Assembly: GCF_006345805.1 (NCBI RefSeq)
Contig: NC_043008.1
Coordinates: 19,716,001 to 19,780,000 of the forward strand
Direction of reading: 5' to 3'
Source: Octopus sinensis
Taxonomy: Eukaryota
Length of the DNA: 64,000 bases
Shown: one piece after another, positions 49,576 through 58,521 of the stretch
Layout: each line of letters opens with the position of its first letter
How positions within the stretch are numbered: position 1 is the first letter of the stretch
The notes under the pieces: generated by a model
Databases searched by the model: none
What the model saw: the letters and a program-made list of their open reading frames with translations, nothing else
Told to the model about the DNA's origin: nothing
Translations under genes and position numbers: made by a program

Positions 49576-50475
49576 TATCAGTCATGATTAGATAACATCA
49601 TAGGTGAGACACCAGTGATTATCCATACTTAGACTCCATATTGTGTCGCCTAAAACGAAATGTAGAATATCATATATTAACATGCATACGACTAGCAGCC
49701 ATATTTAATGTTTCCTCTTGTAAAATTCCAAATTATCTCTACCCGAATATTACTCTTCTTTTCTATACAACATAATTCCGTAATTGAGTGATTAAGACTC
49801 AAAACCTGGAATTTAATATTCCCTGAACGGTTATTGCGAATAATTCATCTCTGGCTTCAACTGAATCTAGTTAGAATATATTAGAGTCCTTTGATTCCTT
49901 TCCAGACATACCGACATATACCGTCGAGATTATGAAATTCGAATATAAAGTTTAAAGTTTCTAAATCAGGTTAAACAGGATATAATCAAAATCAAAATGT
50001 AATTTCGTCTTAGTAATGGAAGTGACTTTTTACGAGATCTGTCTTTGATGTACAATTTGAAGTAAAATATAAAGAAAACGAAAAATCATGGCTTGAAACA
50101 AAGATTTTGAGCTTGATTTTCCAGTAAATTATATTTCGGTAAGTTCAATTGATGATGTTAATCAGAATATTTTCCTTTACTGCATTCATTAACGTCGAAT
50201 TACTCGAAATTAATGCAAGTTATATCGATATGTGTATGTGTACATGAACAGAGTATATCTAATAATGCTTCTGATATGAATCCGTGCCTGAAACTTCGTT
50301 CAGTAGTATTAATGAATTCAAATATTCGCATTAAAATCTTAGCGCAAGTAATGTATCACTAAATCTCCTTTAGATATTTTAGAGTTTGAAGAAGAATTAC
50401 TGAAGATGCATTCACCACTTCTCTCTCTCTCGCTTTCACTTTCTCATTATAAACATATATATATATGTCATGTAC

Positions 50476-50516
<41 letters not shown>

Positions 50517-50521
50517 TATAT

Positions 50522-50615
<94 letters not shown>

Positions 50616-51249
50616 TACATACATATATATTATATATATATATATTATATTATATATATATATATATTATATATACGTACATGACATATATATATATACA
50701 TACATATATATCAAGATGGCGCTGAGCTAACAACAAGTGTGTTAACGTGTCTCTCCTAATATTAAAGAAGTCCTTCCAGAGATCGATGTTATCAGAAGCG
50801 AAATTGTCTGCAAAGCGAATATAAGTGATAGTACAACACAAGCACTGTATTTGAGAAGAATATTTTCGCTTTTGATATAGTATTTGCAACTAGAACATAC
50901 TCGCGAATACACGTGTTAAAACGCACGTGTGTTACTTCCCGAAATCGAAGTGAATTTTATTCTTCGTCTTTGAATCAACAAGACACAGTATTTTTGAGAA
51001 GGATATTTTCGTTTTTGATGTATCTGCGTGTTCTAAAAAAAGCCTCTGAAAAATTTGCTGCTTAATACCAAATCGCTTAGGAAAAACAGAAAGTATCGTC
51101 AAACTGTTGCATGTGCTAAATCGAAACTCAAACCCCTTTTGTTTACAAAGTGCGCTTGGGGAGGAATATAAAAGGTCTGTCTTGTCTATCTATCTTCCTT
51201 TCTTATAAAAAGGAATCACGTAAGTACTCTCTCTCACCGGTAAGGTAAG

Positions 51250-51570
51250 ATATTATTATTTTGTTTCATTAGTGTTCTTTCAAACAGAAAATAAAAAAAA
51301 AAATTAAAAAAAAAAGATATAAAGATATAAAAATACGCGGTATTCTATCTTATAATCTTTATAATTTCGTCCTCCGTGCCTGCCACGCACTCTCTCTTTT
51401 TTACATTTCTATTTCTATCTCTCTCATACATTTTTATTATTTGTTATCATTAGTGGTTCTTTCAAACAGAAAATAATATTTAAAAAGATATAAAAATACG
51501 CGCTATTCTATCTTTAATAATCTCTCCCTCCTTTCTTACATTTCTATTTCTATCTCTCTCATACAGTTTA
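51250..51570 (+). repeat. Imperfect tandem duplication of about 180 bp
   Basis: ATTAGTG(G)TTCTTTCAAACAGAAAATAA...GATATAAAAATACGCG...TACATTTCTATTTCTATCTCTCTCATACA occurs twice. Confidence 0.85.
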
Positions 51571-52394
51571 TACCTTATCTGTCTCCCCATCCACCAGACC
51601 CTCTATTTCCGCTCTCACTCTCCCCTCCTCCTCTCTCTCTCTCTGCAATCGTTTCTCTTTCTGCATCTCTCTCAGATCAACTTTCTCTCACCTCACCCCC
51701 TCTCTCGTTTCTCAACTTCACTCATTCTCTCTTGTATCTATATACCGCCCTCTTTCTCTCTCCTCTGTTACTTACTCCCCTCCCCTCTCTCTGCCTCTTT
51801 CCTCTCCGCTCCTTCACAGGTCAAACCCCTTTTCCTCTCCCCTTCTGTCCCCTTATTTCTTTCTCTACACCACCCTCCCTGTCCCTTTACTACACTCTGT
51901 TGGCGCCCCCTCTCTTCCTCTTCCCCCTTTTTTCTTCCTACCTTTCCTCTCCCTGTTCCCTCTAAGGCTCACCACCCCCTGTCTCTTTTTTCCTCTCTCT
52001 GTCTCCTTCCTCACAACCACCCTCTCTGTCCCTTTACTTCACTCCCTGGTACCTCTATCCTGCCCTCTCTCTCTCTCCTCTCCATTTCATCTCTCTCTTC
52101 CTCTCCATTTTATCTCTCCGCCTTTCTTCTCCCTGCTCCCCCTAGGGTCCACCCTCTGTCTCACTTGTCCCTTTCTACTACCTCTCTCTACCCGCTCACT
52201 CTCCCCCTGCTGACCTGCCATTCTTTCCACCTTTCTCTTTTTTCCCTCTTATTTTCTCTCTTTCTCTCTTCTCTCAGGACAATCCCCTCGTCTCTCTCTC
52301 TATACCCCCTGGCTTTTCCTCCTTTCTCTTCTCCCTCACCATATCTCTCCTTCTCTATCTCTCTCTCTCTGTTCCTATATTTCACTAGAAGAAA

Positions 52395-53131
52395 ATGGCA
52401 AGAAACTGGTCTGCGAGAGAGGTGCAATTGTTCGTCCGCGCTTGGAAGATCGCTGAGGACACTCGCCGAACGACATTATTGCTGCGGCGCTGAAAAGCAA
52501 CAATTTTTCGAGAAACACCGCCCAGATAGAGCGAAAGAAGAGAGAAGTTATCCGTTCCTACGCTCTAATCAGGCAACATGTGGACACCCTGGACATCATC
52601 CTGGGAGGTGACGGCAGCAGGGAGGGCCAAAAGGATGAGGAAAGCATCCAGAGCCAGATGGAGAAGCCTGGAACACAGGGAACGATGACACATGTCCAGC
52701 TTCCAACACCACAACTGAAGACCAAAGAGGTGCGATGGCCGCAAGAAAGGAAAGGCACCCTGGAATTGATGGAAGCAGGAGGTAAAGGGTGACAGAATCA
52801 AGGCTAAAGGAAGCCCTGTCCAGAGAAGCAGAGGGACCCCAGCAAAAACTGTAAGGGCAGGGAAAGAAACACCTGCAAATTCTACCTGAGTGGGGACTGC
52901 TGTACGGCGTTGAAGGTGCAAACTGTCGCTTTGCACATCGGAGGCCCTACCAAAACCGCACGGACGCGAGACAGAGGTCCCTCCCTCAGGGAGAACAAAA
53001 ACAAAAACAAAAAGTTAAAAGAAGGGAAAAAAAGCGCACTGACCACTACTGAAAGACGGTATGCAGATGTGGTGGCGCGGAAACCCAACAGGTGGCCAGC
53101 TTCACCCAGATGTGAGAAGGGCGGCAGCTGA
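52395..53131 (+). pseudogene. LINE ORF1 (frameshifted): Myb/SANT-like N-terminus and CCCH zinc finger
   Basis: ATG at 52395; one-base shifts give MARNWSAREVQLFVRAWKIAE/GHSPNDIIAAALKSNNFSRNTAQIERKKREVIRSY and CKFYLSGDC/YGVEGANCRFAH. Confidence 0.6.
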
Positions 53132-53239
53132 ACAGCAGTCTTTTTTGTGCATGGCACAAAAAATTGTTCAGCAGCTGACCTGGCTACACGCACAAAGCTG
53201 GAACTACCACCACATAAGGCCACCTCCAACAGATGCAGG

Positions 53240-54470
53240 ATGGCCACCACAGACACCAACACCAACACACACACCACAAAAATATTTCTACTGAATGTAG
53301 GAGGGCTGCTGCGCGGAAACTGTAAAAAGAAAATTTCATTCCTGAGAGACCTTGTGACATGCAATCAAGCTATATGCATGGCACTCACAGAAACGCATCT
53401 TGAACCCGATATAGGTGATGCAGAAATACACATGCCGCAATATGCAGTCATACGCACAGATAGAAAAGGGAGGAGCCACGGTGGAGTTGCAATGTACATC
53501 CGAGATGACCTCACGCCTCAGGTCCTGCTGTCATATTCAAACTCAGTATGTGAAACTCAAATTGTACACATAAGACAAACTGATATATCGTCATATGCAC
53601 TACATATCGCCCACCAGACGCCCCAAAACACTCAGGTGTTTGAAGTCCTCACCAACAGCACAACAATAGTGTATTCTTCATGGGTGACTTTAACCTCCCC
53701 AATGTGGAATGGCCTGGGGGGCAGATGCTCCCAGAGATGACACACCATCAGCAGGCACAGTGGAGTCCCTGCTCCATCTCACAAATACCTCTTTCATGGA
53801 GCAAATAGTTCTGCAACCAACAAGGGCAGATAATATACTGGATCTCTGCTTCACAAACAATATGGATATTATCCATAATGTTAATGTGATGCCGACAATG
53901 ATCTCGGATCACAACATAATAGAGCTGTCTATGTATGGAACAAAAGCCCCCGCAGACACACAGCCTATACGAAGCACCTACCATCTCTCCAACTTAAACT
54001 TTCATAAAGCCAACTGGAGTCGATTGAGAAAGAGATCCTCAAACAGGATTGGCCTGAATGTCTCTCCACACCGGACATAAACATGAAACACAAACACTTC
54101 ATGTCCATAATACAAGCCATATGTGACAAATATGTCCCAATGTGCAGGGCCAGCACACACAAGAACAAAAACAGGATCCCTAGAGAAAGAGGATTCTTAT
54201 GAGACGACGGACAAGGATTGCAAACGCCTGAGCAAGCACACCAAAAGTGGTGAGAAGTCTCGGCTCGAAAGAATGCTAATGGAAACTGAGAAATGTCTAC
54301 ATCAGTCCCATGAAAAGGAGAGAGCAGATAAAGAAGCTTGGGTAATAGAAAATATAAAATCAAACCCTAAAGCTTTCTTTAAGTTTGCCAAAGAGACAGC
54401 CACAGTGCACCAGAGAATAGGACCTCTCTTCCAAAAAGATGACTCTCTCACAGGAAATCCACGAGGATAA
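53240..54470 (+). pseudogene. LINE ORF2 N-terminal part: AP endonuclease and linker, broken by frameshifts and a stop
   Basis: LLNVGGL, LTETHL, GGVAMYI, MGDFNLP, NILDLCFTN, SDHNII and IKSNPKAFFKF motifs spread over several frames. Confidence 0.9.
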
Positions 54471-54499
54471 GTGAAATACTGAACGAACAGTTCCAAAGT

Positions 54500-56218
54500 G
54501 TGTTCACTACACCTCTAGGACACAGGCAAGTAAACAACCCAGAAGAATTCTTTGCCACTTTACCAGCGGCCAAAGAGACAAAAATTGAGTACATCAACAT
54601 CGAAGAAGATGATATCACACTAGCCATTGATGAGATTGACACAAACTCAGCTGCTGGACCTGATGGATTCCCAGTGATCCTTCTCAAACCGTGCGAACGA
54701 GCCCTTGCAAAACCGCTACAGCTTCTTTTTCAGAGCTTTCTTGCAAGTGGTAAGCTCCCAGTCAAACTGAAAGAGGGGGTAATATGCCCTATCCATAAGG
54801 GAGGTAGCAGAGCAGATGCTAAAAATTATAGGCCTATCTCTCTGACCTCACACATCAGCAAAGTCATGGAACGAATAGTCCGTAAGAAACTAATCATGTT
54901 CCTTGAAGAAAATGACTTACTGTCTGACACCCAGCATGGATTTCGACCAGGTAGAGGCTGCCTAACACAGCTCCTGCAACACTATGACTGGGTGTTGAAA
55001 CAGCTACTAAATGGCTCAAATGTGGATGTAATATATCTTGACTTTGCAAAAGCCTTTGATAAAGTCGACCATGGTATGATCTGTCACAAACTGCGTGGTC
55101 TCGGCATAGGCGGGAAACTTGGAGAGTGGCTGCACAACTTCCTAAAAGACAGAAAACAGGCAGTTATGAGCAATGGCGCCACCTCCAGGGAAACGCAAAT
55201 AACAAGCGGTGTCCCACAGGGCACTGTCTTGGGGCCACTGATGTTCATAGTGGCCCTTTCAGACATGCTTTCAGTTGCTGCGATGACCACCCTTGCTAGC
55301 TATGCAGATGACACAAAAGTCTCCCACGCAATACAAAACCCTGAAAATATTGCGCATCTGCAACATGAGCTGGACACAATATACAGGTGGGCTGAGGACA
55401 ACAACATGCAGTTTAATGCAGGTAAGTTCCAGGCCCTGCGCTACTGGCACACAAAGGTAAATGACGTGAAGACTGGATACACTGGCCCAGGAAGAATTGC
55501 AATCCCTGAGTCAAAATCAGTGCGTGACCTGGGCATTGACATGAGCAATGATGCATCTTTCCAAATGCATATTGCTAATCTGGTGATAAAATGCAGACGG
55601 CTAGCTGGATGGATTCTCCGAACTTTCAGAACAAGAGAGAAGGAGACACTGATGGTCCTATGGAAAACATTTGTCCTCAGCCGCTTGGACTACTGCTCCC
55701 AACTTTGGTCACCACACAATATAAAACAAACAGCAGAACTCGAAGCAACTCAGAGAAGCTACACAAAGAAAATCGTCTCAATGCAAAATGTCAGCTACTG
55801 GGAAAGACTGAAGGTATTAAACCTCTTCTCCCTGGAGCGGAGGCGGGAGAGATATGCAGTGATATACATCTGGAAAATCCTGGAGGGTCTTGTCCCAAAC
55901 TTTGGCATTCAAAGTTACTCCAACCGCAGAACGGGGCGCCGCTGCGTGGTGCCAAGGATTCCAACATCACCATCAAAATACAGGTCCAGATACTGCAACA
56001 GCTTGGGTTTCAGAGGACCACAGCTCTTTAACATCCTCCCTAAATGCCTGAGAGACTTACATGGTGTGGATGTGGGTTTCTTTAAAACTAAACTGGATCT
56101 CTTCTTGTTGGGAGTCCCAGATGAACCTACCTCACGACAGGAGACACGGATGCGGGCAGCAGCATCGAACTCCCTTGTTGATCAAGTGCCACGTATCAGA
56201 GGTGGATTCACAAACTAG
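54500..56218 (+). CDS. LINE ORF2 reverse transcriptase domain and C-terminus (open 572-codon segment)
   Basis: NYRPISLTS, QHGFR, LDFAKAFDKVDH, GVPQGTVLGP, YADDTK, LFSLERRR. Confidence 0.95.
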   Translation: MFTTPLGHRQVNNPEEFFATLPAAKETKIEYINIEEDDITLAIDEIDTNSAAGPDGFPVILLKPCERALAKPLQLLFQSFLASGKLPVKLKEGVICPIHKGGSRADAKNYRPISLTSHISKVMERIVRKKLIMFLEENDLLSDTQHGFRPGRGCLTQLLQHYDWVLKQLLNGSNVDVIYLDFAKAFDKVDHGMICHKLRGLGIGGKLGEWLHNFLKDRKQAVMSNGATSRETQITSGVPQGTVLGPLMFIVALSDMLSVAAMTTLASYADDTKVSHAIQNPENIAHLQHELDTIYRWAEDNNMQFNAGKFQALRYWHTKVNDVKTGYTGPGRIAIPESKSVRDLGIDMSNDASFQMHIANLVIKCRRLAGWILRTFRTREKETLMVLWKTFVLSRLDYCSQLWSPHNIKQTAELEATQRSYTKKIVSMQNVSYWERLKVLNLFSLERRRERYAVIYIWKILEGLVPNFGIQSYSNRRTGRRCVVPRIPTSPSKYRSRYCNSLGFRGPQLFNILPKCLRDLHGVDVGFFKTKLDLFLLGVPDEPTSRQETRMRAAASNSLVDQVPRIRGGFTN

Positions 56219-57758
56219 TGTAGCTCATTCAGCGGTGGTGCCCCAGCATGGCCGCGGCCTTCGGGCTAAAACATTTTTAAGGATTTAAGGATTTATATAT
56301 GATATATATATATATACATATATGATATATATATATACATATATGATATATATATATATATTATATATATATATATATATTATATATATACTAAGCAATA
56401 AGGGTTTAGCAACGAATTGCCTTACCACATACCGAATTAGAAATAGCAGTCAAAGGGTTATAGCTATTTCTTCTACTAAAAAGGGAGATCTCAGTAAAAA
56501 CAGCAATTGGAAGGCTGACACAAACAGGTAAGAGAGAATGAATTAACTGCAATCTATCAAACATTTTTATATATATATATATTCCATGAATACCTTTATA
56601 TACTTTTCTACTCTAGGTACAAGGACCGAATCCCTAAATATCTTTATATATGTAAAGTTCGAATATCAATATAATGCACGATGAATAATAAAGTATCACT
56701 ATTGAAATCTGAGAGCATCATCTGATATATATATATTTTCTGTTCTAAGAGTAAATTTGTTAAAAGTCTTCAGGTCATAATATATTTGAGTGTTTATTGA
56801 ATAGTGCCTTGACTGGGTTTCATTGACTGCAAGTTATATACATAAGTATATAAATACACACACACAACACACACACACCCACATATATGTATATATATAT
56901 ATTACAAACTATTCAGAATCTATACTCAGTAAGACAGGAAACATTAAAACAACTCTCATTTATTTTTTCTTCCAAAGTTTTATGGAGGTTAATATTTTAG
57001 TTGGTGCTTTGAAAACATGAACCCATTCGTGTATTGATACAAAATGTTAGAACTCCAAAGACCGACCAACATATATGGTAGTCTCCTAAGCCAGTTACTT
57101 TATTTCTATTTTGAATTGTTCCCGGAAAGTAGACCAGTATTTGTCATTACAAGAATGAATAGAACCGGAAAACGTATTTAATACAGTAGAATTATACAGG
57201 CAAAGGATAGTGTGGGATTCTTTTATGCATATTCTACATCTAGCCATAATCGTATTGGATGTGGCTGGAGGGGACTCATCTATAATAGTCCAAGATAATG
57301 TATAAGTGATGTTTTGTAATTTTAAATCATGTTGAGCCTTTGCGTTTTCGCTTATTGAAAGAATTAAGATGAGTCATATTCCGTGTCTTAAAATGTAAAG
57401 TGTTTTCTATATTTACTCTTACTTGATGTTTCTCATTTACCACGCTGTATTTTGAAATTGCGCTTTGACAGCAGACATAATTTGGAGACGCTACAGCTAC
57501 ATGTTTTCGCATGCTTATCTGTAATTTTACTTGGATTTGTTAAGGTAGAGGCAAATTTACTTAGTAGAGTTGGGATTGTTTGCGTTTAGATTTAGATAGA
57601 ATTACCTTTATTTGTTTATTGATATTATTTGGACGTATATGGTGTACCTTACGATGATCTAAGTATTTAGTCCTTTGAATTAGGAGTTTATTTCTATTTA
57701 TGGATGCAAAAATAGGTCACAAATTAAGCGTGGCAGAGTAAAATAATTTTATAGGATG

Positions 57759-57829
<71 letters not shown>

Positions 57830-58091
57830 TTATTTATTTGTATGGATGGGTAGATAGATGGGTAGAAGGATGAATAGAAGCAGGGCCGCATGGATGCGTG
57901 TGCGTATATTTGATTGTAACCTTGTGCAACAATTATGAGTCAAGTTTGCTCATTTGCAGTCTTCCTTGCATCAATCCCTCCATTCTACTACCCATTCACC
58001 CATCTATCCATTCATCCATTCATCCATCCATCCACCTATATAGATATATGCATGTGTGTGTGTCCATGTATGTATATATACATACACATAC

Positions 58092-58122
<31 letters not shown>

Positions 58123-58264
58123 TGTATGTATGTATGGATGGATGGATGGATGGATGGATGGATGGATAGATGGGTGAATGGGTAGTAGAATGGAGGGATT
58201 GATGCAAGGAAGACTGCAAATGAACAAACTGGATGGATGGATGGATGGATGGGTGGATGTGTGT

Positions 58265-58521
58265 GTGAAGGTGCGTGGTTTAGTGTTTGGGGCATTCGGC
58301 TCATGAGCGTAAGGTCGTGAGTTCAAATCTCGGAGACGTGCTGTGTCCTTGAGCAAGTCGTTTTATTACATGCGAAAACATGTAGTTGTAGAGTTCCCGA
58401 ATTATGTGCGCTCGCTGGATTTCCTTTATGTATTTCACTTTCCTCCAGTCCACTCACCTGGCGAAAATGAGTAGTACATGTGTTTCAAAGAACCGGCCTT
58501 GTCGCACTTTGTGTCACGCTA
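58265..58521 (+). mobile_element. tRNA-derived SINE, head B + start of tail X, interrupted
   Basis: TGGTTTAGTG A box, GAGTTCAAATC B box, CCAGTCCACTCACCTG, GTGTCACGCT. Confidence 0.7.

Follow-up and report, generated by a model that had tools for sequence, protein, structure and literature searches.

An octopus LINE family inserted in TA microsatellites with a predicted Myb/trihelix-like domain and CCCH zinc finger in its ORF1 protein

We analyzed a 64,000-nucleotide (nt) stretch of the Octopus sinensis genome (contig NC_043008.1, positions 19,716,001 to 19,780,000 of the forward strand; the whole stretch is called the window, and coordinates are counted from its first base). At 50712-56294, between two TA microsatellites, the window holds a single 5.6-kb copy of a long interspersed nuclear element (LINE) of the type that carries an apurinic/apyrimidinic endonuclease-like (APE) domain and a reverse transcriptase (RT). 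Our subject is the first open reading frame (ORF1) of this element, whose protein (ORF1p) appears to combine a Myb-like domain with a CCCH zinc finger. An earlier note, made from the letters of the window alone, had described positions 52395-52938 as such an ORF1 and had linked the Myb-like domain, speculatively, to insertion into TA microsatellites. Counts of copies given below (intact ORF1, 3' flanks, contiguity) come from 30 fetched genomic copies. The element and its flanks are arranged as follows.

50455-50711, unstranded: (AT)n microsatellite, target DNA at the 5' end of the element (Tandem Repeats Finder: period 2, 132 copies)
50712-52394, + strand: 5' untranslated region (UTR) of the LINE, about 1.7 kb; its alignable part is common to the 30 fetched copies, with varying length
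52395-53294, + strand: ORF1, frameshifted here; 298-302 amino acids (aa) when intact (9 of 30 copies; comparison with copy L003)
53240-56218, + strand: ORF2 (APE endonuclease and RT), frameshifted here (Pfam RVT_1, Exo_endo_phos, Exo_endo_phos_2)
56219-56294, + strand: 3' UTR of about 75 nt, ending in a (AAGGATTT)2-3 tandem tail without poly(A); the tail is found at 30 of 30 3' ends
56294-56390, unstranded: (TA)n microsatellite, target DNA at the 3' end of the element (Tandem Repeats Finder: period 2, 48 copies)

The Pfam model RVT_1 matched window positions 54443-56215 with an E-value (E) of 1.4e-30, and the intact ORF2 N-terminus of the genomic copy L003 matched Exo_endo_phos and Exo_endo_phos_2. 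The segment described in the earlier note sits upstream of this APE and RT frame and overlaps it by 55 nt, with the ORF2 ATG inside the end of ORF1, in a unit that is repeated in the genome with 5' truncation; it is the ORF1 of an APE-type LINE, as had been proposed. When positions 52380-53300 were searched against the genome at the DNA level, at least 40 matches were scored, with identities of 96-98%, and the last 400 nt of the element were 100% identical in at least 24 copies. The number of first-look candidates rose from 103 with the 5' end through 1260 with ORF1 to 2157 with the 3' end, as would be expected under 5' truncation, and 5'-truncated copies are indeed present. The family of the window's LINE is young and high-copy. 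By its tandem-repeat 3' tail without poly(A) the element resembles CR1/L2 elements (Jockey superfamily); we looked to ORF2 homologues as a guide to the clade, and the best 120 of 5976 relatives carry no clade names.

We considered the possibility that the Myb-like segment is foreign to the LINE, being a fragment of another element (for example, a Harbinger Myb-like gene) or of a host gene, in which case the segment could be absent from other copies, as the earlier note had pointed out. However, the 5' UTR, the ORF1 segment and ORF2 were contiguous in 30 of 30 copies, at 96-98% identity, and in nine copies a single open frame runs through the segment and on through the CCCH and C-terminal parts. 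The same arrangement recurs in divergent families and in other samples. Since the segment is present in every fetched copy and in divergent relatives, it is not a Harbinger insertion or another secondary insertion, and we regard a foreign origin as next to impossible.

We took the intact genomic copy L003:1516-2418 as the reference for ORF1 of the window. Relative to L003, single bases are deleted from the window copy after 52460, 52680, 52770, 52825 and 52901 and inserted at 53027 and 53074, giving a total of seven single-base insertions or deletions (indels), all frameshifts, and seven substitutions over 900 nt. The base that the earlier note had found missing near 52457 was placed after 52460 by the alignment, and the frame restored at this point reads NWSAREVQLFVRAW(K/R)IAEDDSPNDIIAAALKSNNFSR(N/T)TAQIERKKREVIRSY. 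The second shift in the note corresponds to the base missing after 52901, inside the finger, and its restoration yields CKFYL(S/R)GDC-WYGVEGAN-C-RFA-H (window 52874-52938), with the reported spacing of C-x7-C-x8-C-x3-H. Both frame corrections were right, as were the peptide strings given with them, but five more indels had been overlooked and ORF1 ends at 53294, 356 nt beyond the end at 52938 that had been assigned to it. The note had also called for a reconstruction of ORF1 from multiple copies, and 9 of 30 other copies gave an uninterrupted ORF1 of 298-302 aa. The corrected frame is not a product of chance, because these copies are intact and homologues at 30-36% identity keep its motifs. 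Several of the indels in the window fall in short homopolymer runs, and the 7:7 ratio of indels to substitutions could reflect long-read assembly errors rather than true decay; positions 52395-53294 are a decayed (or mis-assembled) copy of ORF1.

The corrected reading frame encodes a protein of four parts, with a basic stretch after the finger.

52395-52609, + strand: putative Myb/SANT-like (trihelix, Myb_DNA-bind_4-type) domain, aa 1-72 (Pfam, AlphaFold2 (AF2) and Foldseek)
52610-52873, + strand: disordered low-complexity linker, aa 73-160 (predicted local distance difference test (pLDDT) score 46-58); three of the frameshifts lie here
52874-52938, + strand: predicted single CCCH zinc finger, aa 161-183, with the ligand spacing and the missing base given above
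52939-53059, + strand: basic Lys/Gln/Arg-rich stretch after the finger, encoded by an (AAACAA)n-like repeat whose length varies
53060-53210, + strand: C-terminal module with a (R)YADVV motif and a long helix (AAAEQQSFLCMAQKIVQQLTWLQ), conserved at 30-36% identity

Among 1.84 billion representative proteins, 39 relatives of ORF1p were identified in an exhaustive HMMER search. Several of these are full-length homologues at 30-37% identity, and homologues at 30-36% identity retain the N-terminal motif, all four ligands of the finger and the C-terminal helix, with the linker being poorly conserved. The homologues that carry a species name come from Octopus vulgaris and O. sinensis only. Copies differ in the number of KQ units in the basic stretch, giving proteins of 298, 300 or 302 aa, and the Pro/Thr-rich tail of ORF1p overlaps the start of ORF2. 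In the AF2 model, the C-terminal helices were predicted at 210-229 and 239-273 with pLDDT up to 90, and the C-terminal helix is also conserved in two relatives that have no Myb-like domain (P0029 and P0162). No Pfam match to RRM, CCHC, Transposase_22, esterase or PHD models was found in ORF1p up to E 10. We consider the identity of ORF1p and its architecture (Myb-like domain, linker, CCCH finger, RYADVV motif and helix) to be highly probable.

Segments of 50-77 residues in two O. vulgaris proteins, P0002 and P0003, share 78-92% identity with the linker of ORF1 (aa 60-136), and one of the two proteins is annotated as 'adhesion G-protein coupled receptor G6-like isoform X2'. The linker-like segments are either exonised fragments of transposable elements or artefacts of gene models.

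The N-terminal part of ORF1p (aa 3-71) follows the motif nW..eEl..l..aW.......PN.iI.aaLK.nGF.Rt.aQIERKK.Ef.RSY.LiRPH...LD.IL., which the earlier note had likened to the Myb/SANT-type family PF13837 (Myb_DNA-bind_4). R40, Q44, K48 and Y56 are near-invariant among 20 homologues and are positioned on the predicted third helix; the third helix is the recognition helix in Myb folds. The strongest Pfam match came from the divergent homologue P0039, which scored 29.3 bits (E 1.2e-6) against PF13837, above the curated cut-off of 27, and which also has the family-specific RPHxxxLDxIL extension. PF13837 was matched at E<1 by 7 of 29 aligned relatives, with the match extending in register over the entire domain (profile positions 2-71 of 89), and it was the sole family to match the N-terminal stretch in more than one member; the other matches (e.g., rve_3, DUF4200 and PGA2) were weak, isolated and confined to single members. 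We modeled the 72-residue domain with AF2 from a 20-sequence alignment and obtained helices at 7-19, 25-35, 42-60 and 63-71, with a pLDDT of 88.7 and a predicted template modeling (TM) score, or pTM, of 0.72. A Foldseek comparison of the model with the PDB gave 2jmw as the best match, the DNA-binding domain of Arabidopsis GT-1 and founding structure of the trihelix class (TM 0.67, root-mean-square deviation (rmsd) 3.1 Å, 70 columns, probability 0.90), with the next matches at 0.28 or less. The predicted fold thus appears to be a three-helix fold resembling Myb/trihelix domains.

A number of results weigh against a Myb-like and DNA-binding N-terminus. The score of the window family itself against PF13837 is 14.5 bits (E 0.046), well short of the cut-off of 27, so that for the family on its own this part of the note's proposal is not fully borne out by Pfam. 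For 2jmw the Foldseek E-value is 0.83, and small helical domains readily produce matches; a profile of the domain searched against PDB sequences found no Myb protein; Foldseek with the model of whole ORF1p gave nothing below E 1, most of this model being disordered; and domains of the SANT type in many cases bind histone tails or other proteins and not DNA. The best PDB profile match, ribosomal protein S8 (E 0.04), was judged to be due to chance, and the whole ORF1p sequence had no meaningful match among PDB sequences. The N-terminal domain might then be a generic helical bundle, serving for example in oligomerisation or RNA binding, whose likeness to Myb is fortuitous and which would leave the CCCH finger as the only recognisable part of the protein. 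The Foldseek E-value, the outcome of the profile search and the position of most members below the Pfam threshold (only 7 of 29 reaching E<1) are in line with such a bundle. It does not sit well, however, with P0039 exceeding the curated threshold, with the recurrence of PF13837 alone across members and in register, with GT-1 as the single top outlier of the fold search over 70 columns, or with the four near-invariant residues on the predicted third helix. We therefore consider the generic bundle unlikely, and the N-terminal domain very probably Myb/trihelix-like on the strength of the predicted structure.

The resemblance to GT-1 and Myb_DNA-bind_4 lies in the three predicted helices and the long third helix with its conserved R, Q, K and Y residues. 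The two differ in that sequence identity is 16%, the LINE domain is shorter than the Pfam model (2-71 of 89), and the LINE family has an extra conserved fourth helix (RPHxxxLDxIL).

The CCCH finger of the earlier note is upheld by the conservation of its ligands and spacing in most homologues in which this region is present, but it falls short in the Pfam search, where PF00642 (zf-CCCH) gave E 0.0014 and 18.9 bits against a cut-off of 20.5, a result that counts against the assignment. Five CCCH models in Pfam match the same 23 residues, all below threshold. Both the ligands and their x7/x8/x3 spacing are preserved in L003, P0006, P0008, P0011, P0014, P0016, P0024, P0029 and families B-D, and one or two of the finger cysteines are lost in P0007 and P0033, which are apparently degenerate. 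The AF2 model, made without metal, has a pLDDT of about 82 in the finger. The Cys3His order and the aromatic and basic residues between the ligands are shared with CCCH RNA-binding proteins (PF00642; PARP12/ZAP-like, Torus), but the middle spacer has 8 residues compared to 4-6 in the usual spacing, C-x(7-8)-C-x(4-6)-C-x3-H, and the window protein has a single finger below the cut-offs. The same x7/x8/x3 spacing recurs in the first finger of one non-Myb relative.

We found at least three further families in the same genome with the same ORF1 plan and an overlapping ORF2. Their ORF1 frame is often open, each family including copies in which it is intact, their ORF1p sequences are clearly distinct from that of the window family, and their 3' tails, (AATC)n and (AGTAAAAG)2, are unrelated to its (AAGGATTT)n. 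On contigs from other samples (L072 and L075), the ORF1 homologues P0008 and P0006 overlap an ORF2 that starts with a homologous APE domain. A 965-nt contig (L071, from GCA_024449705.1) encodes P0039, the most divergent homologue, and then, in a shifted frame, two CCCH fingers spaced C-x8-C-x5-C-x3-H and C-x6-C-x4-C-x3-H, spacings which are more usual than that of the window family, indicating that the pairing of Myb and CCCH occurs in another organism too.

Three LINEs from marine or other metagenomes (P0161, P0162 and P0163) have an ORF2 about 46% identical to that of the window and an ORF1 of the non-Myb kind, in which two or three CCCH fingers are accompanied by a 'sFL...' helix at the C-terminus. 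One has a cysteine-rich N-terminus with a weak PHD match (the match in P0162 is at E 0.088) and one has a Pro/Thr-rich N-terminus; the contig of the third ends before the fingers, so its N-terminus lies outside the contig. A further relative, P0029, combines a PHD-like N-terminus (E 0.24) with CCCH fingers, the helix and a YAAAV motif. Taking Myb and non-Myb relatives together, the 3' tails are (AATC)n, (AGTAAAAG)2, (ATCAAGTAAAC)3 or (CTCAAGTAA)2. The CCCH and C-terminal part that is common to the non-Myb relatives suggests a shared core, with the N-terminus as a swappable slot, and the novelty of the window family would then be the exchange of an N-terminal module on this CCCH core and not a wholly new protein. 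We had also considered 'Family E', which matches P0008 in its C-terminal half only, as a source of non-Myb ORF1s; these proved to be ordinary Myb-type ORF1s, and the genome thus offers no internal non-Myb control.

We examined the flanks of the copies with a strict (TA)n test that called for at least 17 of 20 flank bases. The 3' flanks of 20 of the 30 copies passed, and about 26 of 30 were TA-rich by eye; the background rate for this test is 2.2% of positions in the window (binomial p ~8e-15). TA repeats also adjoin the 5' flanks of 8 of 10 full-length copies, and (TA)n was found at the truncation point of five of six 5'-truncated copies, the sixth adjoining (TGTA)n. Integration into (TA)n microsatellites, which had been claimed from the window alone, is real and strong. 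We rejected the idea that the TA arrays were generated by the reverse transcriptase from the tail of the element: their presence at 5' ends, truncation points included, identifies them as target DNA and not as a tail made by the element. Of seven copies from the other Myb-ORF1 families, five were located in TA-rich repeats; of the remaining two, L083 is in (AAT)n and L079 in non-repeat AT-rich DNA. None of the three non-Myb relatives lies in TA repeats, and their tandem tails are of other kinds.

At about 4640-4700 of L082, a TA array is followed by the reverse complement of the tail of the same family (CTCTTTTACTCTTTTACT...), and two copies appear to have been inserted tail-to-tail into one microsatellite.

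In pursuit of a role for this architecture, we propose that the CCCH finger and the C-terminal helix form an ancestral core that would bind the RNA of the element and multimerise into a ribonucleoprotein particle (RNP), a role that we consider reasonably probable by analogy with the CCHC knuckles, RRMs and coiled coils of other ORF1 types and with CCCH RNA-binding proteins. The N-terminus would be an exchangeable accessory slot, which in octopus lineages may hold a Myb-like module contacting double-stranded DNA; we give this step even odds. Such contact could help to keep the RNP at TA repeats while the ORF2 endonuclease nicks the DNA there and reverse transcription is primed. For the explanation as a whole (identity, architecture and the proposed mechanism), we estimate a probability of roughly 55%. 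Its parts are not equally firm. It is doubtful that the Myb-like domain contributes materially to the TA preference, and unlikely, to a slightly greater degree, that ORF1p carries a full target-recognition module, in which a Myb/trihelix-like domain gained by swapping out a weakly PHD-like N-terminal module would bind (TA)n and bring in the RNP.

The reason for entertaining a contribution of ORF1p to targeting is the distribution of the domain, which is present in every TA-targeting family and missing from the three relatives found outside TA repeats. Three considerations count against reading this as cause. The TA-targeting families share the ancestry of ORF2 as well as that of ORF1, so the link between Myb and TA stays a correlation; the correlation rests on three non-Myb comparators and on related families; and experiments on R1, TRAS and SART have reportedly shown the endonuclease domain to be the main determinant of specificity. 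Swaps of the endonuclease between TRAS1 and SART1 are said to transfer specificity, which makes a target set by ORF2 the default expectation for APE-type LINEs. The TA preference could accordingly be set wholly by ORF2, through its nicking specificity, through the structure of TA DNA, or through annealing of the RNA 3' end or of read-through (UA)n. The Myb-like domain would then serve otherwise, in recruitment to host factors or chromatin, nuclear import, binding of its own RNA or promoter, or contacts between ORF1p and ORF2p.

Beyond these swaps and the related ORF2s of all TA-targeting families, an origin of the preference in ORF2 is favored by the AT microhomology between tail and target at the junctions (...GGAT|ATAT and ...GGATTT|ATAT) and by the lack of a poly(A) signal or tail, owing to which transcripts could run through into flanking (TA)n. 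On the other hand, three unrelated tails, (AAGGATTT)n, (AATC)n and (AGTAAAAG)n, go with one target class, suggesting that pairing of tail and target alone explains little, and ORF1p begins with a domain of DNA-binding type in all of the TA-targeting families and in none of the three non-TA relatives. We put control by ORF2 only just short of an even chance.

The arrangement of the window's ORF1 is similar to that of CR1/L2/Jockey ORF1s (types I-V of Khazina & Weichenrieder) in being a small ORF upstream of and overlapping an APE and RT ORF2, and in its modular build of an N-terminal accessory part and a zinc-binding nucleic-acid module. The cysteine-rich, weakly PHD-like N-terminus of the relatives of the element echoes the type III (PHD) ORF1s, and the domain shuffling seen here fits the 'modular, reticulate' evolution of ORF1 in CR1/L2 (PMC4120745). 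The window ORF1p fits none of types I-IV (RRM+CCHC; coiled-coil, RRM and C-terminal domain (CTD)/Transposase_22; PHD; esterase) and would be 'type V, unclassified' in that scheme. A survey of 448 elements lists CCHC, RRM, PHD, Transposase_22, esterase and zf/lz modules for ORF1, and neither Myb/SANT-like nor CCCH is among the domains listed (Metcalfe & Casane 2014, PMC4120745). Our literature search for ORF1 with Myb, SANT or CCCH returned only host factors such as ZAP, and an unremarked Repbase entry may exist; the published work on octopus LINEs covers RTE and Dong elements and not the element of the window (PMC9115989). The suggestion of an undescribed ORF1 class therefore held as far as the Jockey-superfamily survey and the literature searched are concerned, but was too broad in that the CCCH finger and C-terminal helix are shared with non-Myb LINEs. 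What is new among LINE ORF1 types is the Myb/trihelix-like N-terminal module on a CCCH core, the module being so assigned from predicted structure; the kind of element is itself known.

Myb-type domains and repeat-specific integration are each found in other LINEs. The single ORF of R2 has an N-terminal Myb-type domain, and R4/Dong elements, which target ribosomal DNA or (TAA)n, have a diverged SANT/Myb-like domain (PMC7998251). These elements are comparable to the window's in having an N-terminal Myb-type domain in a LINE protein and integrating into a specific repeat, but they use a restriction-like endonuclease and a single ORF with the Myb domain within the RT protein, unlike the APE and separate ORF1p found here, and the Pfam family is PF16282-like in R4/Dong as opposed to PF13837 in the window element. 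Microsatellite-specific LINEs include the APE-type Waldo (ACAY), Mino (AC), Kibi (TC) and Koshi (TTC), plus Dong; none of these targets (TA)n in the list, published in a 2013 review, and the APE elements listed belong to R1 or other lineages (PMC3812793). Waldo, Mino, Kibi and Koshi share with the window's element the combination of an APE-type LINE and a single microsatellite class at both junctions. To our knowledge, the ORF1s of these four elements are not Myb-like.

Of all the parts of LINEs, the ORF1 proteins are understood least, and a conserved form with a Myb-like domain and a CCCH finger would add a new type. At least four Myb-ORF1 families are present in the genome, mostly in TA or AT-rich repeats, and these repeats are a class of target missing from the lists of microsatellite LINEs that we searched. 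The co-occurrence of the domain with a target preference makes the contribution of an ORF1 protein to the choice of integration site a testable question. We know of no earlier APE-type LINE that uses its ORF1 protein, beyond the ORF2 endonuclease alone, for the choice of DNA target, and targeting by ORF1p, if true, would be the first such case. LINE activity in octopus is currently studied in the context of the nervous system, and the elements described here are likely to interrupt and remodel TA microsatellites throughout the 2.7-Gb genome.

The 5' UTR was aligned from the 1500 nt upstream of 52380 at each locus and is alignable from about 50900; matches to 50705-51060 begin at query base 1 in most copies. 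It is unusually long, with degenerate internal direct repeats at a spacing of 135-180 nt (50712-52394) and a pyrimidine-rich stretch on the sense strand (51500-52380) that is conserved among copies and variable in length. This region of repeats and pyrimidines may be a monomer-like promoter region. Elsewhere in the window, positions 57880-58330 contain repeats of tetranucleotide type (TGGA/TGTA-like, with frames WMDGWMDG and YVCMYVCM) beside CA repeats. Downstream of the LINE copy in L084, a 338-aa open frame with polymerase-like motifs (L084:4787-5800) belongs to a different element.

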